Of a stretch of DNA of 64,000 bases, positions 2,380 to 47,548 are shown piece by piece. The position numbers and the translations under genes were made by a program. The stretch comes from Macrostomum lignano (lineage: Eukaryota): assembly GCA_002269645.1 (NCBI GenBank), contig NIVC01001854.1, forward strand, positions 57,346 through 121,345, read 5' to 3'. Below the pieces are notes generated by a model. The model had not been told where the DNA came from. It was given only the letters and a program-made list of their open reading frames with translations, and did not search any database. The first letter of the stretch is position 1. Each line of letters opens with the position of its first letter.

Positions 2380-3483
2380 ATTGCTGTGGCTTTAACTTTA
2401 ATCGGTTAATCTTTCCTAGGGATAACTATCTTTGTCAGCTATGAAGCAAGGAGTTTCATTGCTTAAATGGCCATAACGGCCCAGCTCAGCAGCCTTCCTG
2501 CAATTCCCCCACGTAGAACAATTCTTGTCTTTCATGCAGGAAGCAGCATTATAATTCTCAAAAAAAATGTTGGCTTCCGACACATCTTCCATTCTGTTCC
2601 TTGGAATCTGAAAGCAGGATAAAGATTTTCTTGCCTGCATTCATGGAATCTTGCCATTGTTTCACAAGTTTCCTGTGTGAAACTGTCTCTCAAAGCAATC
2701 CAGGGTGTGCAATGGTTGCCAAACAGCCTCCATATTCGATCGGTGCAGGAGAGGGGGGTTTCTAGCTTCGTCAGGCCTCTACACGCCCTGTGCCTTGGGG
2801 GTTGGTCATCATGGGTGGTGAATCGCAAACCCCTCACCAGCTGAATTTTTGTGCTCAGACTATAAAGGATAATTCGTTCAGGCCATTCTGGAAGCTTAAG
2901 TTGACATTAAATCCCCATTTATCCCATATTGTCCTGGGATTATCAATGATTCCACGCTCAAGCACCGCTCTGGTGCATGGCTTTTCATTTCGGGACAAAG
3001 TTGGCATCGATCCCCTTCGCATGTACAATGGCCTAGCTTGGAACCGAACCAGGAGTCGTGGCGCGAGAGTCAAGGCGTGTTTAACGTTAGGCTGCTCTGC
3101 CTCCCCGATTGCAGGACTGCTCTGCACTGCTGTTGATCAAACTCTCTCTCTGGTCACAAGAGAGCTTTGCTTGAAATTCTGCACTGACTGAGAAATTTCT
3201 TAAAAGGGATATACAGATCCCTGAGTATTTCAGAGCAGCTTCCATGGAAGGGAGCAATGTGCACTTCCTGTCAGTCCTGTATGGTATACACTATAGTATG
3301 CGATTAGTTTAGCACAATAAAAGTTAGCCAAAACTTCACACACAAAAGAAATTATAGACCTATACAGCCAAAATACCAACTGAAAGAAAGAGGTTAGAGG
3401 GATTGGTTTGAATGAAAGATTCTGGCACGCGGCCTTCCTAACGCGCTTAATTAGAGCCAAAGCCTATTCAAGAGCCCCTTCTC

Positions 3484-3492
3484 TATATAAAA
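3484..3492 (+). promoter_or_regulatory. Putative TATA box of cadherin A, followed by a non-coding first exon (donor at 3617)
   Basis: TATATAAAA, then AAAGAG|GTAAGA at 3617. An acceptor CCCAG sits immediately before the ATG at 4222. Confidence 0.45.
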
Positions 3493-4221
3493 GGAGAGCG
3501 ATGATCTAGAGGCACAAAAAACGGTCGGGTCTTAAGTCTCCAGTGGCACCTCTCTGCCTGATTGTTGCAATATTTTGAGTTTCTCGCCGTCTCTGGCGCG
3601 CTGTCAAGTTAAAGAGGTAAGAAAATTGAGACTGTTTTGATATCAACAGAGCCAACACTGTCCATTGTAACCATCCCAACGAAACCTGTACGCTTTTGTA
3701 GTGAGCAAAGAGAGTAAGAAATTGAGTGAACGTTGCAGACGGAAAATGAGCAATGAAAGAAGGCTACAGACTCTTTCCAGGCCCTTTTGAGCTCATCAAA
3801 GTTGAAAAGTGTGCGGACTCGCAGTAAGAAGAGCGAGTAGGTAGAGAGACAGACAGAATTCCAGTTTATTTTTTAGCGCCCACTCACTGTCTTTTCAAGC
3901 TCTCCATCAATCCCCCATAGTTGCGCTTATTTGTTTACTGTAGTTGCCAACAGACACAGTGACGAAAACACTTTGCAAAGCGCACCACCTGCTCCCTGTG
4001 TTTTGCGTAAACCAGTCCCACCCCATATCTACCCCTACGCTGCACTGTTTTCTGCAGGCTTAAATTGCTTCTTACAAAATCTAAGAGCAGAGCGCACCTG
4101 ACAGTGTCGCAAGACTGTTGCAACTAAGTTATACTTTTTGCTACTTAAATTTGATTGGCACAAATAAACGAACGATAAGTCATTGTAATTTTGAATAGTT
4201 TAAACATTTTCCAACGCCCAG

Positions 4222-7200
4222 ATGCATCGAGTACGACTGCATCACCAATTGGCAATTTTGCTTCTGGCGATCGGTTTTGCGTCCCGAGGTGAGTTGAGAG
4301 CGAAGTTCATTTCCAGTTTTCCTCTTTTAGTTGAACTCCTGTACGCATTAAACGGTTTAAATTAGCAAATGCTTTATTCCATGAACATGTAGAGCAGGAA
4401 GATTCCATACTCTCAAATTGAGACAGAGCTGCTGATGATATTGCATGGATAAAATATCTCAGCATCTAATACTTTGACAATTTTCAGGGGACGCGGCTAC
4501 AACATTCCCTTCTCTGCCGGGAAAAATTGACACCGTGTCAATCACTGAGTCGGCCTCAGCTGGTAGCACTATCTACACACTGACCGCTTCTGGAACGTCC
4601 GCTTGGGACCTCAAAGGAGGTGACGTAGCTTGCACTACAGCCACTCTGATAACTTTGTCCGCGAACTCAGGCGTATCGAGTGTTAATCTTGTAGTTGGAA
4701 CGTCTCAGCTGGACTACGAGACTAACAAGTTTCACGTCTGCCTAATCGAGTAAGACAACGATAGTTAAACTTTTACACGTCGCAATCAGTATGAAAATTT
4801 GCGATGCAAATCATGCATTTTTTCAGAGCCGATGACGGCAGCGGACCAGCTACAGCCACAGTTACCGTGAGCGTCGTCAACGCCTGGGACGTGACGCCAA
4901 CAGCTTCGACAGCAACCATCAGCGGCACAGTCAAGGAGGAGCAGCCGCCTGGCACAGCGGTGATGGACACGGCTGCAACGCCGGCTCAGATTGTGTTCAC
5001 CTTCAATGACGCTGAAATTGCCGGATCTAGCGATGTGCTCACGTGCGGCCTGAGTGGGACCAGTTCTGGGCTATTTAATGTAATTAGCGTCCTTCCGAAC
5101 TCTGCGATTGGAATTTTAAGCTTAAAAACGCACGGAAACTGTTCTTATATTAAACCGAAAAATTTGCAGGTTGCAACGGCAAAGGTGGGCAACACTTACA
5201 CCTGCACCATCTCTACCAGAGTATCAATCGATCGAGAGTCGCTAGCCGCTGACAATCTTCCGGCTGTTTACGTTACGGCGACCGACACAGGCGGTCTGGT
5301 TGGCTCAGCAACCATATCCGTGTCCGTGATAGACATCAACGACAATACGCCAACGTGTCCAACATTGACTTACACGAAAACAATCTCCGAGGTAGACACA
5401 AGCGGTACCATGGCAACTATTGCCAGCTGTACTGACGCCGATGCAGGTGTCAATGCTGATCTGGTTTACGCTTTCGTGGGTACCTACACCGGCTTCTCTC
5501 TAACTGGCAATGTTGTCACTCTGACTGCACCGCAAGATTATGATACGATTACTGCCAACCCAGTGGTTATGCTGGTCACAGTGAGTACAAATTCTTACAG
5601 GCTTTCTCTTTTTATGATTAGAGTATAAATAGCTCCTTTCTGCTTTCCGATTTGCAGATTCGCGACAATGCAGCGACAGTCTCTGAACAGCGGACCATAA
5701 CTGCTACAGTGTCGGTACAAGTGACGAGCGTTAACGACAACACGCCTACATTTTCAAGCCTCTCACCTGGCCTGACGCTGACTATTGCTGAGAGCGCCGC
5801 TCTGGGCACCACGCTGTTCACGCAAGGAGCTACAGACGCTGACAAAGCCGGCGAGCCAGACAGTACACTCACCTGGAGCATATTAAGCGCTCAGAGTACT
5901 ACCCCAGGTGGGCAATAAACAATTGGCTGCTGATCTGTTTTGTTTAGATTTACTTCTTTAATTCTTGAGCTGATTTTTCTAAAAATAATTTTTTCAGTTG
6001 GCACGACTCTAACGGGACATTTCACCATTGACAACTCCGGTACTATTAAACTGGGCACGCAGCCACTGGACTACGAGACCTGGCAGGTGGCTGAACTCGT
6101 AGTTAAAGTCGCTGACAATAGCGCAACTACCCCCAGGTCAGTCACTCGGACTTTGACGATTTCTCTCACCGATGTAAACGAGTTCGCGCCAACCTTCACT
6201 CCAAGCAACTATTACAAGGTTTCCCTTGCTGAAAGTAAGTAGTAAAATGCGAGAATTTGTTCCTAGTTTTAGTGTGTCTTAGTCGCTGAATCATTCTATC
6301 TTTGTGCCTACTGTCTTATTGTGTCTTCACGGCTGACTAAATATTTAATATTTAGTTATTTATTGCACCTGACCCAATGGGCAATGCGCATCTGAAGGCA
6401 GCTTGCGGCTGTTCAGTCCAAGGACTGGGGTCGCCACACACCCTCAATTACCCCAGCTAATGCTGGCACCCATTTTACAGCTGGGTGAACTGAAGCAATG
6501 CAGAGTTAAGTGTCTTGCTCAATGACAAAAATTGTTATAGTATCATCGGGAATCGAACCCCCGACCTTCAAGTCGTGAGTCCGACGCTCTGACCCCTGGG
6601 CTGCAACCCCCTTTCAGGCTACAATCCCTTTCAGGCTACAATCCCTTTCAGGCTACAATCCCTTTCAGGCTACAATCCCTTTCAGGCTACAATCCCTTTC
6701 AGGCCACAATCCCTTTCAGGCTACAATCCCTTTCAGGCCACAATCCCTTTCAGGCTACAATCCCTTTCAGGCCACAATCCCTTTCAGGCCACAATCCCTT
6801 TCAGGCTAAAACAACAGAGATTGATTTCTGTGGCTACAACCCCTTGTGCAGACGATGCGATGCGTACACGTATTTCTTATATGTCTTGAGTGTCTGTCTT
6901 TTAGTGTCCTTTAAAAATATGTGTCGTTGCGATACTCGTTGTGTTTTAGCGTGTCGTTCTACCTGAAAATGTTTGTTAGATAAAGACTTTGTTCATAGAT
7001 GCGTTGGTGTAATGCCAAAGCTAAAATATAACTTGCTAATTTCCAGACAACGTCGAAAACTACACTGTGTTGAATACATTCTCGTACTCGGATCCGGACA
7101 AGTCTGCTCTGCCAGTCTGGTGTGAAATCATCTCAGGCAATACGGACTCGGTGTTCAGATTCAACACAACCAACCGTAATGTGCTGGAATTGGCTAAGAC

Positions 7201-8538: not shown

Positions 8539-11500
8539 ATTAGTTAGTTAGTCAGTCAGTTAGTTAGTTAGTCAGTTATAGTTAGCTAACATTGATATAA
8601 ACATTCAAATTTCAAAACTGCATTGTTTCAGCGTCACCTGACTACGAGTCCGTAACGTCCTACACGTTCGTCGTGCGCACCACGGACCAGGGCTCTCTTG
8701 GCCGTACAACCGACGCCACAGTGATTGTCCAAGTCCTGCCTGTCAATGAGTTTACTCCAACTTTTACAGATACAACCATCAGCGTTGCTGAGAACACAAC
8801 ACCAGGCACGGTCGTCACCACGTTTGCTGCCGTCGATGCGGACACAGGCGGTCACGGAATCGTTTCGTACAGCATTCAAGCAGGTGTGTAGCGGCTTTTT
8901 GATATTGATTACATGTATATTCATGTGTTGCTGCACACTTGTCCTTCAGTATTTTGGTAGCTAATTAAACTCTTCTCAAAATTTTAGCAACAAATGGTGG
9001 TACAGCTTTCTTTAGCATCAGCAATTCGGCACAGGTTAGCCTAATAAAGAGCCTCGATTACGAAACGACGACGCAGTACGTTTTGACAGTGAGGTCCACT
9101 GATGGTGGTGGTTCCGTGGTAAGTGCAGCACATTTCGTTTATTTACTAATCAGATTTTAAGAAGCATAAATAGTTAATTTGCAATCGCTCACCTTTTCAG
9201 GGCACGGGACTGTTGACCATTCAGGTGACTGACGTCAATGACAACAGCCCGGTTTGCACCAACGCCCAAGTCACGTAAGTGGACATATCACAGTATCAAT
9301 ACAAAAGCAACGGGAATAAACAATGCAGCAGTTCTTAAATTATACATTATATAAATCTTGAATAACCTTTACTACAGTTTGAGCATGGCCGAGAATGCGG
9401 TCTCAACCACCACTGCTACTGGCACGCAACCGGTTGCTACAGACGCCGACAGTGCTGCCTTGTACGGCAAGATTGCCTACAGCATTGGTGAGTGGCTCGG
9501 TTTTTATAATTTGACAATCGCTTTAGCGTAAGCGAAATAGGTAGGAGAAAATACAATCTTTGTTGCTGCGACAGTAGGGCGATAGCCGAAAAAATGGACA
9601 CTCTAATGTAGAAAAATGCGTCGAATTCAATTAGAGACTGGGAGTGCACAGCACCTTGATATACTGGGACTTATTACCTTAGTTAGATTTCAGGTAGCAA
9701 CTAAAGTCCTTACTTTCAGTTTCTTCTTTGGTACAAGACATGCTATTTTATATTGTAACGAACAGTGATTTAAAGCTAAGCCCAAACTGCCAAACTATTC
9801 AGCCTCGGGAAACACCGGCAATTACTTTGCCATCTCGAGCACAACTGGCACCATCAGTCGGAGCAGCACAGGCGGCTTGGATTACGAGGCTCTGACGCCG
9901 CCATACAACTATTACAACCTGACCATCCACGCCATCGATGAGAACGGAGCCGGGCCCAACACGGCCACCTGCCTGGCTAAGGTGACCGTCACCGATGTCG
10001 AAGAGGGAGCGCCCGTATTCGGCACAACAATTGCTTCGGCCACGGGCATTACTGAGTCTTCCGCAGTTGGCACTCTGGTGTACACGCCTACTTATACTCA
10101 CGTTGACAAATGGGACGTGCCAGTGTTCAGCATTCTGTCGTCGAATGGCAACTTTTCGATTGACTCAGCAACTGGAAAGGTCTACATTGCCTGTGAGTGT
10201 CGATAGCTTAGGAAGACCCTACCCTACAGAAAATTGATAGCAAAGACCGGCATTTCTTGGTACTAACAGCCAAATGAACAAAAATTAATTTATATATGAA
10301 AAATAGAGATATCTCTAGCACTAAATGAAGAATTTATTTGCAAGCTAATATTTTTGGATAAGACTTCATTTCAATCCTGGACTAGCTAATGGAAATATGC
10401 TGGAGTGTAGCGGGTGATTTATAATACCCTTGCTATTTAAAAAAAGTAAATGCTTAAAAAAGGACTTAAAACAGATTCAAGTACGTTGTGCATCATCATG
10501 GATTACATACGTTATACATCATCATAGATTACATACGTTATACAACATCATAGATTACATACGTTATACATCATCATAGATTACATACGTTATACATCAT
10601 CATAGATTACATACGTTATACAACATCATAGATTACATACGTTATACATCATCATAGATTACATACGTTATACAACATTATAGATTACATACGTTATACA
10701 TCATCATAGATTACATACGTTATACATCATCATAGATTACATACGTTATACAACATTATAGATTACATACGTTATACATCATCATAGATTACATACGTTA
10801 TACATCATCATAGATTACATACGTTATACATCATCATAGATTACATACGTTATGCACCATACATTCCATCATGTACGTACAGGGTGACGCATATGTAGTG
10901 AAACCCAAAAATGAACTAAAAACAGCAAGTTTATTAACAGTACATAAAAATTCACAAAGAATATAAAATATTAGTAAGTTTCTGTCTTCCTTTATCTGTT
11001 ATTCTGTTATTTTTGTGTTTAATTTGGTCTCCACTACATATGCGCCACCCTGTAATCATTGAAAACAATCCGGTAAACTAAACTATAATGTTAAAGGGTA
11101 AAGTATTAAATTACCCTATCAGTAACAAATAAACAATATTAAGTAATTTTATAAAATTTCAGCCGCTCTCGACTACGAAACGGCAAGTCAACACGTTTTA
11201 GTACTGGTCGCAACCGACAAAAACGGCAACACGGGAAGCATGACGCTCACAGTTCCAGTTGGAAATGTCAACGAATTTTCGCCAGTCTGCTCGCCCATGA
11301 GCACAATAGTGAACATTGACGAGAATGACTTAACATCGCCTTCGTTCCCGAAAAATGTAATGACCTTCTCATGCAGCGATGGCGACGCGGGGACAACGTT
11401 ACTGTACAGTGTCACCAAGGTAAGAAGTGATTATAATTAACAACAATCAAGGCATTTAATAAAGTGCATATTAACTTTAACTGCAGGTATACATATGCTT

Positions 11501-14500
11501 TAAAATATGTCAACTCTAACATTTAAGGGACTTACTTTCTTTCATTTTTAGGTCAATGGAACCGCCGGTTCTACTGGATACCAATTCATATCAAACATTC
11601 TGAGAACAACCGCAGCCCTAAATTACGAGACCGCAATCAATGCCATCCTTGAGATCACAATCTCCGACCAGGGACCGGGGACAGCCAACATTCTGACTGT
11701 CACAGTTACTGTGTCAGTGAACCCTGTCAACGAGTACACACCGGCCTTCACTGCGTCCACTTTGACTCCGGCTGCTGTCGCAGAAAATGTTGCCGTTGGA
11801 ACGAATGTCGCCTCGGTAAGTTAATTAAATTCTGCTCCATGCATTTTTTCAATGGCTATTTTACTTATGGATTCAGGAGGTTTTGGCTATAAACAAAAAT
11901 CTGACGCCCTCAGCTCGTCGCTACGGACAGCGACCAGGGATCGACCCATGCGACGCTTAAATACGCGATCTTGTCAGGAAACTCGAAAGGTTTCTTCACC
12001 CTGGCCGAGTCAACCGGTGTGGTGACCACGGCCAAGTCACTTGACTACGAGGATGCAACGCAATACTTGTTGACTGTCAGCGTAACTGACGGTCCGGGGC
12101 TCAGCTCGACGGCCACCCTCACAATTAACCTGTCCGATGTGAACGACAACAGTCCAGTGTTTACCTACTCTACCTATTCTGTAACGGTGGACGAGAATGC
12201 TGGAACAGGAAGCGTCCTGCTCTCTTTTGCTGGTAACTATTTGTAATTTATTGCTTTCGAAAATTGACTTTTAGACCATCAATTCTTTCAAAGACAAATA
12301 CTTAAATTTTGATCAAATCAAAATGGTAAACAAAAAATATGTGAGAGAAGATAAAAATGTTGGCTTTTTTAGACAAAACGCCATCATACGAGCTAGAATC
12401 GATCAATAAAAAAGGAAAAATCCCAAAATCTTTAAAATTTGGTTGCAGCAAAGTTTTGATATGAATAGCAGTCTTAATTAAGTATATTTACATGTACCAA
12501 TTGTTTTTATGTACATGCAAATTATTAATATTTACAATCCAATTATAGGCAAAGTGAGCGACGCCGACGGATCGAGTCCTAACAAGGATGTCACACTGTC
12601 CCTGGTGACAACTGGCACACCGTTTCAGCTGGTCTCCAACCAGCTGGAGCTGACCACAGGTGGCACTTTGAACGCTGCCACCAATCCGAGTTACTCGCTG
12701 GTTATTCGAGCCACTGACGGTGCCGCGGCTCCGGCCACGCAGACGACAGACGCTCAGGTCATCGTTCGGGTGATCGCTGTCAACACTGCGACGCCAACTT
12801 TCAGCGGCACTAGTACGGTTAGCGCAGCGGAGGACACGGCCGTTGGCACCCTGATCTGCATTGTTAATGCCTCAGATGCTGACGTAAGCAATTCATTTGT
12901 TAAACTTGTGCCATAGGAAGCAGAGTTTAGACACCCTGACCTAACATCCTCAGGCTGTGAGAACTTCTAATCCGTGCATTTCTAGCCTGCTACCTAATCA
13001 CAGCAGAGTTTATTTCGCTTCAAAATGCGTTGAAAATATTGTAGTTTTGTTTTCAAATATCGCTTTAAAGACTTTCGAAAATCTCGTCCGAAAGAGTGTG
13101 CGCGCTTGTTTCTGGGTGTTTGGATGCACTATAAGATAATAATTGGTTCCTTTATCTTTTGCCAATGTATTTTACTTGCTAGTTGTTCAAGTGAACATCA
13201 GGTGCTGGGTCCTGTAGTATGTGTTCGAGATGTGCATTTAAACTTTTTTTCCATTTTTTAGTCCGGACTGAACGGCAAGATTACATATTCGGTCGCTACG
13301 GGCAACACGGACAGCGACTTCACCATTGACGCCAACAACGGCAACATCCGACTAAACAACGCTCTGGACTTCGATTCTGGCACTAAAATCTACTATCTCG
13401 GCATCCAAGCCATAGACAGCGGCAGCCCAGCCAAATCGTCGACGTGGACCCTGACCGTGTCGGTTACTGATGTCAACGACAATGCGCCAATTTGGTGGGC
13501 AAACAATACTTATTCGAGTAAGTTTTATTTTCTTCTATTAGTACTTGATAAGGCAGTCTTATTTTGAACTATACGCAGTAATTCAGCATGCTACTGATAG
13601 TAGTTTTATTCTTAGTATCCTAGTATTACGAATTGATATGGTTGTCTGTCATTATTTTAATAGTACTGTAATAACAAAGGTTGGCAGTGAATCGACCAAT
13701 ACGAGTCGATTAAAACCCATAGTCTAAACCGCAGGACAACCACTCTAAATACTTCAATAAAAAATGTTCAATCGGATCATAATGGTGTGACATGTCTTGT
13801 GTGATTTATTGCAGTTTCGATTTCGGAGGCCGTCACAACACCGTCAAACATTTATCAGTCGTTGGTGTCGGACCCAGACACGGGCGCGGGCGGCACGATC
13901 ACTTATTCGCTGCTGTCGCAGACTGGGACAGCTCCAGACGGTGTCTCCGCATTGTTCGCAGTCGATACAGTCGGAGCTATTCGCGTTGTTGCGCAGCCAG
14001 ACCGGGAATTCATGTCAACCTATTATGTCAATGTTCAAGCCTGCGACGGCGGCTCTCCGTCGCTCTGCTCTCAGAGACTGTTCACAATCTACATCACTGG
14101 TAAGGCATTGAAAAACCATTGGCACCGATCGTTTAGCAAAATGACATTGACGCTAGTGGCCTCCAACCCTCTTCAGATACGAATGACAACACGCCGGACT
14201 TTGGACTCTGCCCAAAGGAGATCTCAGTCTCGGAAGCGGCGACCAATCCCACCATCATTAGCACTATCACCGCTTCGGACGCTGACACCGGTGCCAACGG
14301 AAACATCGCGCTCTACTCGCTGACTAGCGCAGACGGTGGCGCCTCATCTCCAACGGGATTTTTTACCGGTGAGCTGGGAGAGCTAGCTAAAGCTAATTAT
14401 CTCCTTGATCTGGTTAAAAAACAGTTGCCCTCTATCTAGTTAGGTTGCGGGACTGTGAAGACCCAAAGCATGTACACAGGGTACAATATTACACTCGTGG

Positions 14501-17500
14501 GTATACATCTGCACGCCAAAGCTATTCATGAAATCTACTTCGTGGGTAGACCCCAAGTTTATGTGACTGCGCTGTGGAATCGAACCCGAAACCCTGATGG
14601 AGAGTCGGACTCACTAACAACAGATTTGTAGCTATCTACGAATAAAAACCAGATATATCAAATACATGCATTTTTTACTATAGGCTCATTTTAGCTCGTA
14701 TTATATTCGATTACAGTTTCAACTGCCGGTGTGATTTCAACTGCTGGAGCCTTGGATCGCGAGTCCAAAAGCGTCTACCAGTTCTACATCAACGCTGAAG
14801 ACAGCGGCTCGCCGACGCGTCGAACTGGCTCTTGCCTGCTCAACATCACCATCACAGACGTCAATGACAATGCTCCGGTGGTGACCGGACAACCGATCAT
14901 TACATCCGTGTCCGAGGCGGCCACCGGTGGCACAATTTTTTACACCATAGTGTCAACTGACGCGGATATTGGCGCGAATGCTATTCTAGCCTACCAAATC
15001 ATTGCATTCACTCCGGCTAACAATTTCTCCGTCAATAACAATGGTCAGCTGAGCGTTTTTGCCAGTAACATGCTCGATAGAGAACGCAATGCCGCTTACA
15101 ATCTGACCCTGCGAGTGCGGGATATGGGCACGCCATCTCAGTCCACCACCTTCACCGTCAGCATTAACATTCTCGACGTGAATGACAACACGCCGAGTTT
15201 CGGTGCGACTTCGATCAGCCGAAGCGTGGATGAGAACAGCGCCGTAGACACCGCGGTTGGGGCCGTGGTGGCGGCTACCGACCCCGATCTGGGTGAAAAC
15301 GCCTCGCTAACCTACCAGATTGCTTCCATTCTGGTGCCGACTTCTGGTGGAGATTATTTTAAAATCGATGCGCTTACAGGTTTGTCGTAGCTAATGCGCT
15401 ATGCTATCTAGATTTCAGTAATGTACTGTTTCGTCTGCATGGCTTAATGAGAGAGCGGGAGCGCCAGAAGAAATGGCATACTCACTCTGACTTTCTTGAC
15501 TTACGAGCTAGCTTCAGCGGCTCAGGGGGGTTCCACTCCAGAGAGTCAGGTGGATGGTTGCTAGCATGGTAACACATTAGGGTAGCGGACGAGCTGGCAG
15601 AGACCTAAAAACTCTGGAGAGGTCCGGGTTTGGGCCGAGGTAGGTAAGCCTGTCCTGAGTAAAGGTGGCGCATTCACAGATGAAGTGCTCCGCATTCTCA
15701 ACACTGGAGAGGCAGAATGAGCATTCCTCACTGCAGATTTTTCCCTGGAAGTAGCCATTCCTACCAAAGCAGCCATGACCTGAGAGGGCCATGGTTATCG
15801 CCTTTAGGTCCCTGCGGTTGAGTCCAAGCTGGGCCCTGCGGAAAGCGGCAGACTTTGAGCGTTAGACCACCTCTCCCTGTGCTTTGATGCTACCCACTGC
15901 CCAATCCAAGTGGTTACAACAAAGGCCCATTCACTTAGCCGTTACCCAGTGTGCCCAAGTTGCAATATAGAATCGACAATGCATTTTATAAATAACGCCG
16001 ACGGAGTTTAAGTTGTTGAACTAAGTTGAATAAGTTGAACTATTCAAATTGATTATAACGTATTAAAACTCAGCAGTTATCCAATTTTTAAAGACGATAA
16101 TTTGCCTTTTTTGGGCATCCGTGACGTTCCAGGTCAAGTCAAAGTGAAAGTGGCTTCTCTGGACCGCGAAGTTCGGGACACGTACATCTTGCGCCTAACA
16201 GCGCAGGACAACGGCTCACCCGCTCTGACAGGCACGACTACGCTAACGATCACTATCGCGGATGTTAATGATAATGACCCTGTGTTCACCAGCACCTACA
16301 CATCCGGCGTGTCAGTCGATGAGAATTCTGTCGCGGGTACCGCGGTAACAACTTTCACGGCTACGGATGCTGATCTCGGCGCTAATGCGGCAGTCACCTA
16401 CTCGATTGACACCAGTCGGCTGAATGGCACCCTGGTTGACACCTACTTCCAGGTTAGCCCCGATTTACTGCATGCTAAATACTACGATTTTCCACGTAAC
16501 TCACTACTAGCAGAAGCAGTGCGCGTACGACCGTTAGAGATGAGTTCCTTAATCTGTAAACCAATAGATTATCAGCTTTATGAATTAATTCCAACTTATT
16601 AATTTGAGGCAAGTCGAAAGAATCCAGGTGTCAAGCAGACACAGTTTTCCAAATTTTGAGCGTTCTAGAGGGTGACCTATCTATACGATTGAATAGTATT
16701 GTGCAAATACGTATGTAATTATGAATCATAGCTGTGAGTTGAACACTGTTCCTAACCCTACCTTCAAATCTTTGTTAAAAGGTCGGCGCGAGCACAGGTG
16801 CACTCACAGTGAAGACTGCAATCGATCGTGAGACCTACTCGATGCTTCAGTTCTATATTATCGCTCAGGACGGCGGTTCACCATCAAGAACAACCAGCGC
16901 AAGCGTTAACATCTACATAAACGATGTCAACGACCATACGCCAATCTTTAATCCAAGTTTCTACAACACCGAAATGTGCTACAAGTAAGTAGTTGCGTAG
17001 GGAAAATAGCCCAAAAATAGCCCAAAAAATCCTCTTGCAAATGATTTTTTTAGTTGCTGTCAATTTATAAAAACTTAATTAATTAAAAATCAAACTTTAC
17101 TTAGCAATTGAGCTGCCTTCTCCTCCTCAGCGAAAATCGGACCGCCATCACCTTGGCAACGCTGAAAGCAACCGATGCCGATGCTACAGGAAACACCATT
17201 ACCTACGGCTGGGGCAGCAGCAGCAGCAACTTTGTGGTTAACACGGCTACTGGCGCGGTGACTCCAGCCTATGGCCAGACCACAACAAAGAACACCAAGT
17301 ACGTGCAGTATCCCACTGCGACAGACTCCGGATCGCCTCAGCGTACCGCGACTGCCACAATCCGAATTGACACCTACGATCCAACCGAAGTCGCGGTTTG
17401 CATAACCTACACCCTGTCCGAGGCGAACTTTCTGACCTCTCAGACAAGCATCGAGTCAGCGCTCAGTTCCACTCTGCAGTTCAAGTATGCAACTGTAAAG

Positions 17501-19025
17501 TGCAAGACGTGGAGGTACACAGTCTCGTCTTCGTAAGTATTTTATTACCCTCCTTATAACGGTTAGCTGCTGTCATAATCATAGGGTACTCGCACTAGCA
17601 ATTCAGACCATCATCGCATTCCAGAACTGAGATCAAGGCCTGTCACTACTGCGTGCAAGACAACTCCACTGATAGCGCCAGCAACTTGGCCAACGCCAAG
17701 TCTTTCGTCACCCAGTCGGAGCTGCTAACGTTCTGGCGACTGGACTCTGCGGGCACCCCGACAGCAATGCTACAGTCGTCAAGTTTCAGTAGCTACCCGA
17801 TCACCAAGGTTGAAGGGTGAGACTGAATATTAATGCCTATGAATCCAGAGCTACTTGTCAAACTGAGGAAAAATAGTCCATGAAGGTTTAAGGTTTAAAT
17901 TTAAGCTAACTTGAACTTCAATGCAAACAACTCGATTCAGATACACGGACTCGACTAGCTCAACGTCTACGCCCTGGTACCAGACGCCTTGGGGCATCGC
18001 CATCATTGTGCTGAGCTCCGTGCTTGGCGCCTCTCTACTCGGCGTGGGCATCGGGGCCCTGGCCAACTACCTATGCAATAAGAGTCCAAAGGTGCCAGTG
18101 ACAAAATCGACTCCCAAAGTGCCGCCAAAAGCTAAAAACCATCCGCCTGCGCAACCGCGAGCCAGACCGGTAAATGTTTTTAGTCGGCATGCATTCACCA
18201 TTTCCTGCTTTAAGCCGCAAAGGCACCTTCTACGAAATTCTTTACACTAATGCCAGAACACAATGCGCTTGTTGTCCCGAGCTGTACACTTATAAATCAA
18301 CGCTTCAAAATCATTACTTTGGAATCATGGTAGATTGTGTCTATGGTTTTGGAGGCGAACAATGGATAAATAATCAGCGGTCCCTGATCGATCGACCGCT
18401 GATTCTTTGCATTGTTTTTCTGTTTGACGATCCTACAGACAATGCATTGTTTGTAGTAATGGATTGTTCTGCATTAAAAATGTGAATAATGATCGTCAAA
18501 TTGCTAAACAATGATATTGATTTTTTTGCCCGCGAGTGACTAAAACAATTCATTATCTATGACAGAACCATTTGCACAAGCACTTTTCAAATTAATGTTT
18601 TTTATAGTAGCCTAAAATAATGATTTCGAAGAAATTAATTATGGCTGTATATGTGAAAAATCAATCAAGTTCTGGCTTCAAAACCGTAGAAGAAGGCTCA
18701 CATTGTTGAGATGCAAAGCAAAGGAACAGTACATGGCTTGAGGGGAGTTGTCGAGATGCCAAAGACTTGTAATTTAGACGCTTGAATTTTAGCTTCAAAA
18801 AGTTCAAAGGTGGTTAAAAATCCGAGAGAATTATCTTTTGTCAAAGTTAGTCTATGGTAAAACCCCATTTTACTTCCTTAGAACGAGAACAAGAACGTCT
18901 ATCGAGACCGCAATGTCTGGCGAGGCACGCCGGATTTCGGCCGGAGCTTCCAGAATTCTCCCGGGGAGCTGCAGCGCACCGGAATTTCACCGAACAGTTC
19001 CCGAGTTCCAACGCCGGTGTCTTAA
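4222..19025 (+). CDS. Cadherin-related single-pass membrane protein A: about 20 EC repeats, a membrane-adjacent domain, TM and a short tail; 28 coding exons, about 2,430 aa
   Basis: Hand-spliced exons: 4222-4288, 4488-4749, 4827-5079, 5170-5580, 5658-5907, 5998-6234, 7047-7249, 7339-7570, 7710-8069, 8632-8883, 8988-9118, 9201-9274, 9378-9487, 9803-10192, 11163-11419, 11552-11815, 11914-12232, 12549-12883, 13262-13517, 13815-14099, 14177-14368, 14717-15379, 16133-16452, 16782-16984, 17131-17532, 17625-17816, 17941-18169, 18882-19025. All introns are GT-AG and phase-compatible, and the frame is open (7,293 nt). Repeated xE, DxD, LDYE/LDRE and DxNDNxP motifs are present, with a signal peptide and a TM segment (WGIAIIVLSSVLGASLLGVGIGAL). 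Confidence 0.92.
6363..6608 (-). mobile_element. tRNA-derived CORE-like SINE (copy 2), in a cadherin A intron
   Basis: Aligns end to end with 108-356. Confidence 0.85.
6611..6808. repeat. 17-bp minisatellite (AGGCTACAATCCCTTTC)n, about 11 copies
   Basis: Direct tandem units abutting the SINE head. Confidence 0.95.
8126..8590. repeat. (TTAG)n/(TCAG)n microsatellite
   Basis: Tetranucleotide run in cadherin A intron 9. Confidence 0.95.
10492..10853. repeat. 23-bp minisatellite (CATCATAGATTACATACGTTATA)n, about 15 copies
   Basis: Direct tandem units in cadherin A intron 14. Confidence 0.95.
14420..14620 (-). mobile_element. Second tRNA-derived SINE-like element (fragment)
   Basis: The minus strand carries GGGTTCGATTCC (B box) followed by ACAGCGCAGTCACATA, similar to the element at 49560-49815. 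Confidence 0.45.
15485..15905 (-). mobile_element. Non-LTR retrotransposon 3' fragment (R1/LOA/I-type C-terminal CCHC zinc knuckle), copy 1
   Basis: The minus strand reads ALSGHGCF...[30 protein letters not shown]. It is homologous to 21388-21858 and 60019-60220. Confidence 0.75.
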
Positions 19026-19908: not shown

Positions 19909-20787
19909 CTTGCAGTAGCTTTGTCACTCCCTCTTGCAGTAGCTTTGTCACTCCCTCTTGCAGTAGCTTTGTCACTCCCTCTTGCAGTAGCTTTGTCACT
20001 CCCTCTTGCAGTAGCTTTGTCACTCCCTCTTGCAGTAGCTTTGTCACTCCCTCTTGCAGTAGCTTTGTCACTCCCTCTTGCAGTAGCTTTGTCACTCCCT
20101 CTTGCAGTAGCTTTGTCACTCCCTCTTGCAGTAGCTTTGTCACTCCCTCTTGCAGTAGCTTTGTCACTCCCTCTTGCAGTAGCTTTGTCACTCCCTCTTG
20201 CAGTAGCTTTGTCACTCCCTCTTGCAGTAGCTTTGTCACTCCCTCTTGCAGTAGCTTTGTCACTCCCTCTTGCAGTAGCTTTGTCACTCCCTCTTGCAGT
20301 AGCTTTGTTACTCCCTCTTGCAGTAGCGTTGTTACTCCCTCTTGCAGTAGCTTTGTCACTCCCTCTTGCAGTAGCTTTGTCACTCCCTCTTGCAGTAGCT
20401 TTGTCACTCCCTCTTGCAGTAGCTTTGTCACTCCCTCTTGCAGTAGCTTTGTCACTCCCTCTTGCAGTAGCTTTGTCACTCCCTCTTGCAGTAGCTTTGT
20501 CACTCCCTCTTGCAGTAGCTTTGTCACTCCCTCTTGCAGCAGCTTTGTCACTCCCTCTTGCAGTAGCTTTGTCACTCCCTCTTGCAGTAGCTTTGTCACT
20601 CCCTCTCTTTGTCACTCCCTCTTGCAGTAGCTTTGTTACTCCCTCTTGCAGTAGCTTTGTCACTCCCTCTTGCAGTAGCTTTGTCACTCCCTCTTGCAGT
20701 AGATTTGTCACTCCCTCTTGCAGTAGCTTTGTCACTCCCTCTTGCAGTAGCTTTGTCACTCCCTCTTGCAGCAGCTCTGTCACTCCC
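19909..20787. repeat. 24-bp minisatellite (GCAGTAGCTTTGTCACTCCCTCTT)n, about 36 copies
   Basis: Direct tandem units. They generate the spurious (EGVTKLLQ)n, (RGSDKATA)n and (LSLPLAVA)n ORFs. Confidence 0.97.
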
Positions 20788-21310
20788 TTGCAGTAGCCTT
20801 GGGACCGATGGCGCTGGTACCCCTTATACGAAGCGGTCCCAATATCTCTAAGCTTGGACCACCAGTCGAAAAACTGCAATGCAAGCATCGGCCTGTGACA
20901 GACTTGTGATCGATAAATATACGGAAGGGGCATGTAAAACTTTGAGAGTTTCCCCAGCGTGACTCGCAGTGTGATTCGTTTCATTCTAAGCGTTTTGCGA
21001 TCAGCCAACTTTCACGATTTTTTTGTATTCTGCAGCTTTGGCTATCAAAACACCAACTTAATTGCCCAGTCATGAACGACTGAAACTATCCTGTACGAGA
21101 AAAAAAATTCCCTCAGCTACGTTCAACTGAAAGCGGAATTACCGGAAGTTAATTTTCGAATCCTATCGACTTCCGGACCTAACTAATAGCTCAAGCCCCT
21201 ATATGAGGCATGCGATCTGCTCACTTCCAGCTAGCCCTAAGCAAACAAACTTCGACAAAAATAGTCAATTTGTTTAACAGAGAAAAATATTCCACTTCAA
21301 ACTGGCAATC

Positions 21311-22462
21311 ATGATGAAGATTCTGCTGTGCATTGCTGTGGCAACAGTTGCTTGCTTCTCTAGCGGTAAGTTTTCGCCAGTGGAAGTGTTGACTTACTTG
21401 ACTCAGCTGCAGGGGCTCCGTGCATCCGGATGCAGCGAGGAGGCGTTGCCGCCCATTTCGCTAACCCCTGGCGACCACGGGCAGCTAGTGCTGCGGTGTC
21501 GCGCAGGGAGTTCCGGTGGCGCCGGTGTCCGCAGCGCGGTCCCCCTCCGGAGAGTCCAGGAGGTGGATTGTCGCTCGCCCGGTAGCCCTTAGGTAGCGGA
21601 CGAGCTGGCAGAGATTCTCGGGCCTGAAAACGTCGGAGAGGTTCGGGTTTGGGCCGAGGTAGGTGAGCCTGTCCTGAGTAAATGCGGGGCATTCACAGAT
21701 GAAGTGCTCCGCATTCTCGACACCGGAGAGGCAGAAAGGGTATCCCTCACTACGGATTTTTTTCCGGGAGGTAGAGATGTCTGGCAAAACAGCCATGACC
21801 CGAGAGGGCCATGGTAACCGCCCTGATTTCCCTGCGGTTGAGTCCAAGCAGGGCCTGGACTACGTTTCTTCTCTTTTATACGTTTAAAATTAAGCCGTTA
21901 GACTTTGATGGTACGATATTTAGAACTCATGGACATGCAAAATCGAACGAGTAAACAAACATTCTGGTTTGACTCTGCGTGCAGGATTGACAGTTCTGCA
22001 TGCTCTATGAACGCGACGTGATTCTAGAACGCTTCGTGCACTCATGCTGATGCTTTGTTGCTTTTGCCAATTGGTGCTTTTGCCATGGCTAGCTTTTTAG
22101 CGTTCTAGAATTGTTCCAGTTTCGACAGTAAGTACATGGGCACTACGCTAATACCAGAAATGCACGGACCCAAATCAATCTGATGGTATCAAACTTTTCC
22201 CGCAAGTTGAACCCGCTGTGCTTGTTTTTTTGCCGGATTTCCAGTTGACGCCGGATGTCGTAGCATCGGCCAAGAGTGCTACAAGATGCCGTGGGCCCGT
22301 TGCTGCACCGGCTACTGCCGTTTCAACAGCAACCCGTTCAAGGGCGGCACCTGCGTGTCCTGCCTGTTCGAGAACGATCGCTGCTCGAGCGACGGCGAGT
22401 GCTGCCTGGGCGAGTGCAAGTGGTCCGGTGGGAAATTTGCCCGGGTCTGCCAGGTAGCCTAG
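21311..22462 (+). CDS. Secreted cysteine-rich peptide with two tandem inhibitor-cystine-knot (knottin)-type frameworks; 2 exons (21311-21365, 22245-22462), 90 aa
   Basis: AGC G|GTAAGT and TTCCAG|TT GAC splice in phase 1 to give [90 protein letters not shown]. The C-C-CC-C-C pattern occurs twice. Confidence 0.85.
21388..21858 (-). mobile_element. Non-LTR retrotransposon 3' fragment with 3' UTR, copy 2, inside the knottin intron
   Basis: ORF 21485-21847 contains [31 protein letters not shown]...[13 protein letters not shown]. It ends in CCCCTGCAGCTGAGTCAAGTAAGTC, a tail shared with the other copies. Confidence 0.8.
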
Positions 22463-23424
22463 CTTAATCTCCTTCTTTGAGCTCCTCATCCTGGCCTGCG
22501 AAGGCTGCAGTCTAAACGCGAGAAAGAAACGCGCATGATAAAAATTTGTCTTTTTTATTTTCTTGTTTGCTTTGAAGTCAAAAGCAAGGCCTGCGGAGAG
22601 AAAAGGCGAAATACACCTGGGGACGACGATTTCCGAGGCAAACAACAAATTGCTTTAATTGCTTTATAGCGCAACCATCTCTTTGGTGGATTTCGCGATT
22701 TCGATAAAAATAAAAATAAATTTTGAAATCATGCAGAATCCAGCTTCACGTTACTCTTTGGCGAACCTTCTGCTATCATTTTAATCTTCCATTCCGTTAT
22801 TTTGTAATTTTTAGGATGCCTTCAAAGCCGATTTCATCTCCAATTATGGGACTCGAATCAGGGCCGGCGACAGCTGAGCCCCAGTAATTTTCTCAGCAAT
22901 TTTTGGACGTCTTTGTCTTATCCGTTGACGAGAAATTGTTTACAGAAAGATTCGTAATCGGCTTAGGCACCTACGTCAAGGGATTAAAATCGACGGCTAT
23001 AAGCGCGTAGGATGTGTTTCATAGGATTTGAGGCTCTGAAAAATCCGCGTGATGGAATCTATAGATTTATGCTTCTTATGCACAATTCTGCGTTGACGAT
23101 ATAAACAAAAATATTTTATTGAATTTGACGAAGAATTTTTGCTTTGTCTATACAGACGGCTCTTCCAATTTATCAACGGATGCGTCTTGTTTAGTCGCGT
23201 GAAAGTTCGTGAAACCTTTAAATATAAGATTCAAAATTTGGCCAAATTGCTCGCGACGGTAAAGGGAGACTTTTAAAATTTTAGGGTGCCAGAAACTAAA
23301 AACTGTTGAAGACTTTCCATGTTGTTCGAGACTGTTGGATGTTTTACAGCAGCCTCCAATTATAGATAAGTTTCAGCTTAAGCCATTCGCTTCTTGCTGC
23401 TTTTAAACCCTTCTGGAGGCTGTT

Positions 23425-23700
23425 GGAAGCTGATGGTGCTGTTGGAGGCTGATGGGTGCGTGCTGTTGGAGGCTGATCGGTAATGTTGGAGGCTGATGGG
23501 TGCTGTTGGAGGCTGATCGGTGATGTTGGAGGCTGCTCGGTGATATTGGGGCTGATCGGTGCTGTTGGAGGCTGCTCGGTGATGTTGGAGGCTATTCGGT
23601 GATGTTGGAGGCTGCTCGGGGATGTTGGAGGCTGCTCGGGGATGTTGGAGGCTGCTCGGGGATGTTGGAGGCTGCTCGGTGATGTTGGAGGCTGTTCGGT
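23425..23700. repeat. 20-bp minisatellite (GGTGATGTTGGAGGCTGCTC)n
   Basis: Degenerate tandem units. Confidence 0.9.
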
Positions 23701-24649
23701 CGTATCAGGACTCTTTCCAGGCTATCTGATTGCTGTTGAGAACTAAGGAACTAATAAGCCATGCCTTGCCTGTCGGTATCTTTGTATACAACTAAAGTCT
23801 TAAACATTGTCACTTTTCACAATAGATTTCTGTTTCTTTTTTACGAGCATACAATAGAGCCTGCATGGTGACACTAGATGTAGCGTTTTACCAACCCTCG
23901 CGCAGACAGATCGAGACCAGTTTCTGGCTTGTTTGTCTTCTTCAGTGACGTCGCGTCCTCTTCCACCACTCTCGGTGCGCTGCCATTTTTTGGTGAAATT
24001 TTCTCGTGTTGTGAGAGATTCTACGATTCATATCTTCATTCGCCTTTTTTCTTAGTAAGTCTAAATTGAATCCCCCACAGGCTCCATGTCGTAATCAATT
24101 GCCCCTAGAGCGGACATCGGACTTTAAAGTAGGCATCAAGCTAGACCAAGGTTGGAAAACTGTTTTTTTAATTTGAAGGACGAAAAAGAGAATAGAGAAG
24201 AGAGAGGAGATGCGAGAGGAGAGGCGAGAGGAGGGCGAGAGGAGGGCGAGAGGAGGGCGAGAGGAGGGCGAGAGGAGGGCGAGAGGCGGAGAAAGGAAAG
24301 AGTCCTCAAACCCAAAAGCACTGACGTGGTAACGCAGATATTTCAGCGAAGTATGTGCCATAATTTCGAATATTTTAGGTTCTCTCTAAAAGCTATGAAA
24401 TGAGAGAGGAGAGGAGAAAAAGAAAAAAAGCTAAGAAGAAACCTTGACCGGACTGGATTGCTATTTTGAAATTTCAAACGACAGGGCCAGATAGGTCGGA
24501 GGCTTCGCCGGCTGCATGTCACGACTCCAGAGTTTGCCGACCCCTGAGCTAGAAGCTAATCCTCACGGTCTCCTAGACCTAAAACACGTGGCCATAATAA
24601 ACAAATTCGATTCGTCTTTTCCGCCTCAAACCAATTTGCGGGCCTTCAA

Positions 24650-30302: not shown

Positions 30303-35154
<4,852 letters not shown>

Positions 35155-37465: not shown

Positions 37466-46584
<9,119 letters not shown>

Positions 46585-46694
46585 CCTGCGGACATTTAAG
46601 CGGGTGTTTTATTAATGTGTTTTTCCTTAAGCAGATGCGGCAGAGTCATTGTTTTAATGAAGTGAGAGGTTTGGATGGATGTGAGGGCTTTGAT

Positions 46695-47115
46695 AAGGGG
46701 TGAGGGGTTCAAATTAGGGGTGGAGGGGTTCAGATAAGGGATGAGGGGTTCAAATTAGGGGTGGAGGGGTTCAGATAAGGGATGAGGGGTTCAAATTAGG
46801 GGTGGAGGGGTTCAGATAAGGGGTGAGGGGTTCAGATAAGGGGTGAGGGGTTCAGATAAGGGGTGAGGGGTTCAGATAAGGGGTGAGGGGTTCAAATTAG
46901 GGGTGAGGGATTCAGATAAGGGGTGAGGGGTTCAGATAAGGGGTGAGGGGTTCAGATAAGGGGTGAGGGCTTCAGATAAGGGGTGAGGGGTTCAGATAAG
47001 GGGTCAGGGGTTCAGATAAGGGGTGAGGGGTTCAGATAAGGGGTCAGGGGTTCAGATAAGGGGTGAGGGGTTCAGATAAGGGGTTCAGATAAGGGATGAG
47101 GGGTTCAGATAGGGG
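46695..47115. repeat. G-rich 20-bp minisatellite (GGGGTTCAGATAAGGGGTGA)n
   Basis: Starts about 110 nt after the C2 gene stop codon. Confidence 0.95.
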
Positions 47116-47300
47116 TGATGGTTACGGATAAGTGTGTATCGAGTGTTTGGGTGTTTAGGTTGTAGGCGTTGTGTGTTAAGCTGGAGCTGTAGATGGGGGT
47201 TTAGTTTGGGAAACAAACATTTTCAGTCTTAATAAAAAGAGTAGCTAGTGGCTTTTCCGCTTGACATTTTTGTTTCCAATTGCTGGCTTTATCGTGGCCA

Positions 47301-47302
<2 letters not shown>

Positions 47303-47345
<43 letters not shown>

Positions 47346-47346
47346 G

Positions 47347-47434
<88 letters not shown>

Positions 47435-47548
47435 TCTGTCTGTCTATCTGTCTGTCTGTCTGTCTGTCTGTCTTCTGTCTGTCTATCTGTCTGTCTGTCT
47501 GTCTGCCTGTCTGTCTGTCTGTCTGTCTGCCTGTCTGTCTGTCTGTCT
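47303..47548. repeat. (TCTG)n microsatellite
   Basis: Tetranucleotide run. Confidence 0.95.

Follow-up and report, generated by a model that had tools for sequence, protein, structure and literature searches.

A divergent UPF0506 gene of the flatworm Macrostomum lignano, predicted to encode a secreted protein of two fused cystine-knot lobes

Introduction

The UPF0506 proteins (Pfam PF11703) are small cysteine-rich proteins of tapeworms and flukes, and a relative of theirs is encoded in a 64,000-nucleotide stretch of the genome of Macrostomum lignano, a free-living flatworm (GenBank assembly GCA_002269645.1, contig NIVC01001854.1, positions 57,346 to 121,345 of the forward strand; this whole stretch is referred to below as the window). 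The gene occupies positions 21311-22462 of the window, and its product of 90 amino acids carries twelve cysteines arranged in two successive C-C-CC-C-C frameworks. The term UPF0506 was applied to a knottin fold found only in Platyhelminthes by Berger et al. 2021 (PMC8400842), who gave for it the motif C-x6-C-x7-CC-x4-C-x9-C-x2-C-x6-C-x5-CC-x3-C-x4-C, which is descriptive and not a family definition. A member from Schistocephalus solidus was recovered in the same study in four of five secretomes and in no body proteome. The gene upf0506 is a parenchyma-specific marker, established by in situ hybridisation, in the cell atlas of adult Schistosoma mansoni. Elsewhere the family members figure merely as entries in expression tables, and one paper lists a UPF0506 domain in Anopheles, outside the flatworms.

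A preliminary description of the locus, made from the nucleotide sequence, had proposed a hidden gene for a secreted double-knottin peptide and had considered toxin, antimicrobial and seminal-fluid roles for it. The present analysis upholds the part of this proposal that concerns a real two-exon gene for a secreted-type protein of two lobes, while the gene proves to be neither hidden nor novel and the leaning towards a toxin is not sustained. It is considered probable that the gene encodes a UPF0506 protein of two knots that is secreted and has an endogenous binding role. The evidence from family membership, predicted fold, gene structure and genome copies is presented below, and the possible functions are weighed against it.

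Membership of the UPF0506 family

Comparison of the translated product with Pfam identified the UPF0506 domain with a score of 31.7 bits against a curated cut-off of 23.2 (E = 2e-7). The match extends over residues 23-79 and profile positions 1-56 of 59 and spans both knots, lobe 1 corresponding to profile positions 1-33; the same domain is also precomputed for the deposited protein. A single-sequence, word-indexed homology search returned no protein besides the query itself, and the relatives emerged only when 1.84 billion representative proteins were searched exhaustively with phmmer (E <= 1e-3). Seven other proteins were obtained in this way, six of them from named flatworms and one an unnamed ENA sequence, with five bearing the UniRef label 'UPF0506 domain-containing protein'; the genera represented were Echinococcus/Taenia, Schistosoma, Calicophoron, Schistocephalus, Trichobilharzia and Heterobilharzia. 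Two profile searches enlarged the set to 30 proteins (29 and the query), every named one from a flatworm, and added Hydatigera, Spirometra, Sparganum, Hymenolepis, Mesocestoides, Paragonimus and Fasciolopsis. All the named homologues are tapeworm or fluke proteins, for example Echinococcus EGR_08713, S. mansoni A0A5K4FBJ7 and Schistocephalus solidus A0A183TDP7 and A0A183TB17, and the M. lignano protein is 33-45% identical to them. The rarity and novelty implied by the preliminary description are thus not borne out, since the Pfam family extends across tapeworms and flukes and its motif was published in 2021.

No cysteine column, of the twelve, varies in the alignments with 8 and with 11 sequences, and in an alignment of 13 rows the last two cysteine columns are near-invariant, one row being a truncated sequence. 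Two glycines and the Val immediately after the sixth cysteine are also invariant in the family alignments. The two lobes are separated by two residues in each of the 27 members scanned, the first of these residues being Val in 22. Other conserved positions include a Lys and an aromatic residue in loop 2 of lobe 1, glycines, the Leu after Cys7, an acidic residue before the second CC and the Trp after Cys11, all of which are kept in M. lignano. Such residues, conserved family-wide outside the cysteines, are likely to be structural or contact positions.

The spacing of the cysteines is 6,7,4,9 / 2 / 6,5,3,4-5 in 26 of the 27 members, seven of these having an x5 last loop, and M. lignano alone has 6,7,3,11 / 2 / 6,5,3,10. 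Against the published loop motif, six of the nine spacings of the M. lignano protein are the same and three differ (x3 for x4, x11 for x9 and x10 for x4-5), the three deviations being indels within or beside the two hairpin loops. These spacings and the two-residue Val-Ser linker were read from the translation and are exactly those given in the preliminary description.

The relatives also agree with the M. lignano protein in its ends and in the layout of its gene. From the N-terminus to the first cysteine there are 22 residues in M. lignano and about 20-25 in the full-length relatives. The preliminary description had allowed that the frame might instead continue through a CAG/GTAGCC site into a larger protein; the deposited model disagrees with such a continuation, and 26 of the 27 members end 1-13 residues after the last cysteine, the exception having a tail of 33 residues. 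M. lignano, Echinococcus granulosus and Heterobilharzia americana each have a GT..AG intron in phase 1 at a distance of 1-4 residues ahead of Cys1, and the two-exon layout, with a signal-peptide exon followed by a single domain exon, is common to both of the homologues checked (Echinococcus and Heterobilharzia). On these comparisons of sequence, the M. lignano gene is a divergent member of the flatworm UPF0506 family, a family whose motif and knottin character are already published.

Tandem arrangements were observed among the tapeworm genes. One region of Echinococcus granulosus APAU02000116.1 (408-6410) contains a tandem pair of UPF0506 genes (3220-4585 and 6001-6410), and the gene beside the pair, on the minus strand at 408-1898, has a weak match to Tachystatin_A, a knottin, so that the region may be a small knottin cluster. 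The UPF0506 gene models of Taenia asiatica and Hydatigera resemble fusions of two tandem UPF0506 genes.

Predicted fold of the two lobes

The two lobes differ in composition in the way that had been proposed. Knot 1 is basic and aromatic (net charge +4, five aromatic residues, isoelectric point (pI) 8.9) and knot 2, whose acidic residues fall within its first half, has a net charge of -1 and a pI of 4.9. The cysteines of the precursor are at positions 23, 30, 38, 39, 43 and 55 and, after Val-Ser, at 58, 65, 71, 72, 76 and 87.

AlphaFold prediction from the single sequence gave a mean predicted local distance difference test score (pLDDT) of 41.6, and prediction for the 71-residue mature region with the family alignment of 11 sequences gave a pLDDT of 83.3 and a predicted template-modelling (TM) score of 0.60. 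Strands were predicted at mature residues 23-26/34-37 in lobe 1 and 55-59/66-70 in lobe 2, and each pair forms a beta-hairpin bearing the fifth and sixth cysteines of its lobe, the secondary structure that typifies the inhibitor cystine knot. Comparison of the model with the PDB by Foldseek gave 42 matches, most of them knottins and none at E <= 0.001. The top three were the double-knot toxin DkTx (6cuc, E = 6e-3), DkTx bound to TRPV1 (5irx_E) and a double-knot hexatoxin (6ba3). The whole-chain root-mean-square deviation (rmsd) to the double-knot toxins is about 7-11 A, because the orientation of the lobes differs. A single lobe superposes on the spinach trypsin inhibitor SOTI-III (4aoq_E and 4aor_D) with an rmsd of 1.3-1.4 A and a target-normalised TM score of 0.76-0.79, at E values of 0.7-4.

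Profile comparisons point in the same direction. The family profile was aligned to the remipede double-knot toxin Xt3a (7rz3) over both lobes (E = 0.0046), the profile of lobe 2 was aligned to omega-atracotoxin-Hv1a with all six cysteines in register (E = 2.4e-4), and lobe 2 also gave sub-threshold Pfam matches to Toxin_29, Conotoxin_I2 and Toxin_23. A fold of the Dickkopf, colipase or prokineticin type was considered and rejected, its matches (Dickkopf_N sub-threshold at E = 0.034; Foldseek E > 5) being weaker than those to double-knot proteins. The cysteine framework, the Pfam assignment, the modelled hairpins and the Foldseek and Xt3a matches together support the structural reading of the preliminary description, and a fusion of two inhibitor-cystine-knot (ICK) lobes with a two-residue linker between them is the best reading of the UPF0506 domain. 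In each predicted knot the defining disulfide pairing would be I-IV, II-V and III-VI, the last of these passing through the ring closed by the other two.

Gene structure, deposited annotation and genome copies

The two-exon model with the junction 21365/22245 agrees with the translation base for base (Table 1). The coding sequence (CDS) begins with ATGATG, the first ATG being taken as the start. The donor is GTAAGT, and the acceptor is the pyrimidine-rich TTTTTTTGCCGGATTTCCAG, which ends at 22244 and is followed by TT. The joined CDS of 273 nt yields the 90 amino acids and ends with the stop codon TAG at 22460-22462. Val, Asp and Ala occupy positions -3 to -1 before Gly22 at the end of the hydrophobic N-terminus and fit the -3/-1 rule by eye; the mature peptide would accordingly comprise 69 residues, by predicted cleavage after Ala21. 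In the mechanical list of open reading frames (ORFs), the frame of exon 2 begins at an internal ATG and covers 58 amino acids (22286-22462), under the cut-off of 60, which explains its absence from the ORF track on which the preliminary description had remarked. Two elements were noted upstream of the gene (21199-21206 and 21270-21281): a TATA-like CTATATGA about 105 nt 5' of the ATG, and a pyrimidine-rich TTTGTTTAACAG 30 nt 5' of the ATG, which could be a spliced-leader acceptor.

Table 1. Coordinates of the UPF0506 gene, its parts and the neighbouring genes in the window
Feature	Coordinates	Strand	Remarks
Exon 1, CDS	21311..21365	+	55 nt, from the ATG at 21311; signal-peptide part: 18 residues and the first base of Val19
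Phase-1 intron	21366..22244	+	879 bp; canonical splice sites, GTAAGT...TTTCCAG
Exon 2, CDS	22245..22462	+	remainder of Val19, DAG, the entire 12-Cys domain, QVA tail and stop
Lobe (knot) 1, Cys23-Cys55	22256..22354	+	C-x6-C-x7-CC-x3-C-x11-C; basic, aromatic
Inter-lobe linker Val-Ser	22355..22360	+	two residues, from the translation
Lobe (knot) 2, Cys58-Cys87	22361..22450	+	C-x6-C-x5-CC-x3-C-x10-C; acidic first half
Probable 3' untranslated region	22463..22720	+	ends close to a pair of overlapping AATAAA signals (22709, 22715)
Large cadherin gene	11311..19025	+	upstream neighbour
Ammonium transporter gene	30303..32462	+	downstream neighbour

The gene is not hidden. Its product is 100% identical, over the full length, to M. 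lignano proteins deposited for three contigs of the same assembly (PAA56754.1, PAA63340.1 and PAA94306.1; UniRef100_A0A267E785, UniProt A0A267E785) under the name 'hypothetical protein BOX15_Mlig011635g2/g4 [Macrostomum lignano]', and in two of the three deposited loci the gene spans 1152 bp, exactly matching 21311-22462. Positions 11311-32462 of the window are 100% identical to positions 68656-89807 of NIVC01001854.1. The GenBank annotation of M. lignano was built from RNA-seq-guided transcript assemblies only (StringTie/TACO and a de novo transcriptome), with ORFs from TransDecoder (PMC5730564). Because the deposited annotation is derived from RNA-seq, the splice junction already rests on transcript evidence, known here through the deposited model. 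The gene identifier Mlig011635 is not mentioned in the literature full text or in the supplements of M. lignano papers that were searched; a literature search with 'Macrostomum lignano' and 'knottin' gave no paper, and no publication on the M. lignano gene was found.

The three genome copies of the CDS differ by three synonymous and no non-synonymous substitutions, all three in exon 2, with exon 1 being 100% conserved; 3' of the stop codon there are no mismatches over 248 aligned nt. The intron is the most divergent segment between the copies, and in the third copy (NIVC01000012.1) it is shorter by an indel of about 104 bp and rearranged in its middle part. Recent polyploidy is known for this M. 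lignano line (PMC5730564), with which three near-identical copies agree. The paralogue survey suggested in the preliminary description was performed with tblastn: neither the precursor nor either lobe, compared with the window and with both other copies in the genome, revealed a paralogue nearby. One gene type was found in M. lignano, in three near-identical assembly copies.

The double C-C-CC-C-C framework occurs once in the six-frame translation of the window, as judged by a regular-expression scan, and in none of 100 simulated windows (first-order Markov), in which single frameworks average 0.07 per window; the pattern exceeds what chance would produce. A further single C-C-CC-C-C match at about 32264 on the minus strand lies in an Arg/Pro-rich translation antisense to the ammonium-transporter gene and is probably due to chance.

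Probable biological role and alternative explanations

The following course of events is proposed for the M. lignano protein. The precursor would enter the endoplasmic reticulum and be cut after Ala21, and the product of about 7.6 kDa would fold into two ICK lobes with three disulfides each. Since Cys6 and Cys7 are two residues apart and each would be anchored in its own core, the lobes would probably form one rigid, protease-resistant unit and not two freely tethered heads. Once secreted, the protein may bind an extracellular target through its exposed loops, the likeliest contact surfaces in M. lignano being the enlarged beta-hairpin loops of both lobes. As a best guess, the protein would serve the flatworm itself as an endogenous ligand or modulator, acting on a receptor at the cell surface or on an ion channel, and would be produced by internal secretory cells of the parenchyma type.

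Such a role as ligand or modulator is favoured, at about an even chance, because conservation of the family reaches from a macrostomid that lives free to the parasites, all but one of the 27 members have fixed loop lengths, a single gene type and no expanded toxin family is present in M. lignano, and the schistosome member is parenchymal. Conservation between Macrostomorpha and Neodermata, together with the synonymous-only differences between genome copies, fits a constrained endogenous function. A function as a venom, prey-capture or seminal-fluid toxin is less likely. A wider proposal would make UPF0506 an ancient, non-venom family of endogenous double-knot ligands, dating at least to the common ancestor of the macrostomid and the parasites, having with two residues the shortest inter-knot linker known and acting on a flatworm receptor or ion channel; taken as a whole, this is a tentative and rather doubtful extension.

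Several observations weigh against an endogenous two-knot binding protein. The loop lengths of the M. lignano protein are unlike those of all 26 relatives at three places, and for this reason it may bind with a specificity other than theirs. The AlphaFold alignment had only 11 sequences and two of the five models had a pLDDT of about 50, and the matches from Foldseek have weak E-values, the best being 6e-3, which is common with proteins of this small size. Comparison of lobe 1 with lobe 2 by hhalign gave no similarity beyond the cysteines (probability 0.8%); a simple tandem duplication can therefore not be claimed, since the lobe profiles have no detectable mutual similarity. The literature and supplements searched yielded no data on where the M. 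lignano gene is expressed, where its product is localised or what phenotype it has. Lastly, a defensive or antimicrobial role is possible, and the other roles, each of them possible, are ranked in the order toxin, antimicrobial peptide, protease inhibitor and seminal-fluid protein.

A bivalent double-knot toxin, used for defence or prey capture and acting with high avidity on the ion channels of other organisms in the manner of DkTx, Hi1a and Xt3a, would account for the two-ICK architecture, for the best whole-chain structural matches, which are to DkTx and the double-knot hexatoxins, for the match of the family profile to Xt3a and for the sub-threshold matches to spider, scorpion and cone-snail toxin families. 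The protein is also basic and rich in aromatic residues, and a neurotoxin-like role was speculated upon by the authors of the tapeworm secretome study (PMC8400842). We nevertheless consider it unlikely. No support for a toxin was found: free-living and parasitic flatworms have the family in common and its loop lengths are fixed in all but one member, unlike the fast-diversifying venom families; the schistosome member is located in the internal parenchyma and not in an outward-opening gland; and the single gene type of M. lignano is not part of an expanded family. To our knowledge M. lignano has no venom apparatus, and its diet consists of diatoms. The two-residue linker is in addition too short for separate equivalent sites of the kind that DkTx occupies (linker lengths from PMC9950431).

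An antimicrobial or protective peptide of mucus or tissue, comparable to knottins of host defence, is improbable. It is suggested by the cationic, aromatic and disulfide-stabilised nature of the peptide, by Ep-AMP1 as the best single-sequence PDB match of the mature peptide (weak, E = 0.06), by the appearance of the antifungal knottin PAFP-S among the Foldseek matches and by the gene with a weak Tachystatin_A match that adjoins the Echinococcus UPF0506 genes. All these matches are below significance, however, the peptide has a net charge of no more than +3, and there are acidic proteins among the relatives (one with a pI of 5.1).

That the closest superpositions of a single lobe are those on SOTI-III raises the question of a knottin-type protease inhibitor, which would serve tissue protection or the control of extracellular proteolysis; the parenchyma cells of schistosomes are rich in proteases. 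The knottin core is generic, so that superpositions of this kind, at the E values given above, are functionally uninformative, and the family alignments have no recognisable conserved reactive-site loop, which makes an inhibitor very improbable. Transfer at mating as a seminal-fluid protein has as its sole argument that a small, secreted, Cys-rich protein occurs in a species with many seminal-fluid proteins. Seminal-fluid proteins are fast-evolving and lineage-restricted and UPF0506 spans the phylum; the schistosome member is parenchymal, no evidence for this role was found, and it is hardly to be expected. That there is no gene at all, the cysteine pattern being due to chance or to a mis-spliced model, is suggested by the short length and the lack of a long ORF and by nothing else, and it can practically be dismissed in view of the identical RNA-seq-derived deposited model, the Pfam score above threshold, the intron position shared with homologues, the absence of the pattern from the simulated windows and the purely synonymous differences between copies.

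One possible target came from a report in which a S. mansoni 'hypothetical protein UPF0506' binds human IGFBP1 (bioRxiv 10.64898/2026.06.27.734962). This lead was rejected, as the identifier in the legend, Smp_311670, is that of the Kunitz inhibitor SmKI-1 (PMC6838133), and it is further weakened by the interaction not being reciprocated.

Genomic surroundings and repeats

The gene lies between the large cadherin gene and the ammonium transporter gene of Table 1; at the homeologous loci, the ammonium transporter was called in all three and the cadherin in two of three. Part of the intron (21388-21855) is a GC-rich fragment of a dispersed repeat (transposable element), of which diverged copies are present at 15523-15835, 60152-60220 and 61419-61621. 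Within this fragment, an ORF on the antisense strand (21485-21847) gave no match in Pfam; its Cys/His motif recalls the C-terminus of ORF2 of non-LTR (long terminal repeat) retrotransposons.

Tandem repeats are found on both sides of the gene. A minisatellite at 19909-20801, about 510 bp 5' of the ATG, consists of 37.6 copies of the 24-bp unit CTTGCAGTAGCTTTGTCACTCCCT with 96% matches and yields a spurious repeat ORF of 383 amino acids on the minus strand. Immediately 3' of the gene there are further short tandem arrays, built of 20-bp and 11-bp units (23421-23700 and 24202-24286). A satellite block at 39147-47548 comprises a 12-bp unit repeated 255 times (40961-44033), TCTG repeated 126 times, GAGAG repeated 113 times and arrays of 10-, 20- and 26-bp units, and the extreme AT and GC skews at 40-48 kb are due to these simple satellites.

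Significance

The importance of the locus is modest, the gene being deposited and the family named though uncharacterised. Three points go beyond the public annotation. The best reading of the UPF0506 domain is a fusion of two cystine knots through a linker of two residues; the family reaches a free-living, early-branching flatworm and therefore did not originate as a factor of host manipulation by parasites; and the M. lignano copy is a structurally divergent variant with enlarged hairpin loops. Because members are secreted by a tapeworm and serve as cell-type markers in schistosomes, a free-living model that is tractable could help to find their function. If the proposal of an ancient endogenous ligand family were true, tandem ICK proteins would not be limited to the venoms of spiders and remipedes, contrary to PMC9950431, and the M. 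lignano gene, in a transgenic worm amenable to RNA interference, would offer a practical route to the function of a protein that tapeworms release into their hosts. Double knottins that are rigid could, in addition, be attractive as stable scaffolds for binding.

Comparison with known systems

Among the described systems, the UPF0506 proteins of tapeworms and flukes are the nearest. Like the M. lignano protein, they have a signal peptide and one domain of about 58 residues with the same register of twelve cysteines, a linker of two residues that is mostly Val-x, and conservation at Gly, Lys, Trp and aromatic positions. Unlike these relatives, the M. lignano protein is the single free-living member found, and of the lineages represented its own branches earliest. 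Its score against the family profile is one of the lowest; both its hairpin loops are longer, the last by 5-6 residues, and the 'SKTIF' usual in the relatives is replaced by 'YKMPW'.

The double-knot toxins DkTx (tarantula, acting on TRPV1), Hi1a (funnel-web spider, ASIC1a), Xt3a (remipede, ryanodine receptor) and CpTx1 have two C-C-CC-C-C lobes per chain, as is predicted for the M. lignano protein. In Xt3a, four residues separate the flanking cysteines, compared with two, counted in the same way, in M. lignano. According to PMC9950431, which uses its own definition, the linkers of DkTx and Hi1a are 12 and 6 residues long; DkTx has a long, loose linker and separate equivalent sites, and the M. 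lignano protein would be nearer to the short, semi-rigid linkers of Hi1a and Xt3a. The double-knot toxins belong to venom lineages, whereas UPF0506 is phylum-wide and comes neither from a venomous animal nor from a venom gland. The M. lignano protein thus appears to be built like a double-knot toxin, and it is not classed as a venom toxin because its context argues against a venom origin and bivalent action on channels.

Single-domain ICK peptides such as omega-atracotoxin-Hv1a, the calcins, the asteropsins and SOTI-III resemble each lobe in the cysteine framework and the predicted hairpin. They consist of one unit, whereas the M. lignano protein would be composed of two such units fused head to tail, each with the predicted pairing of a knot.

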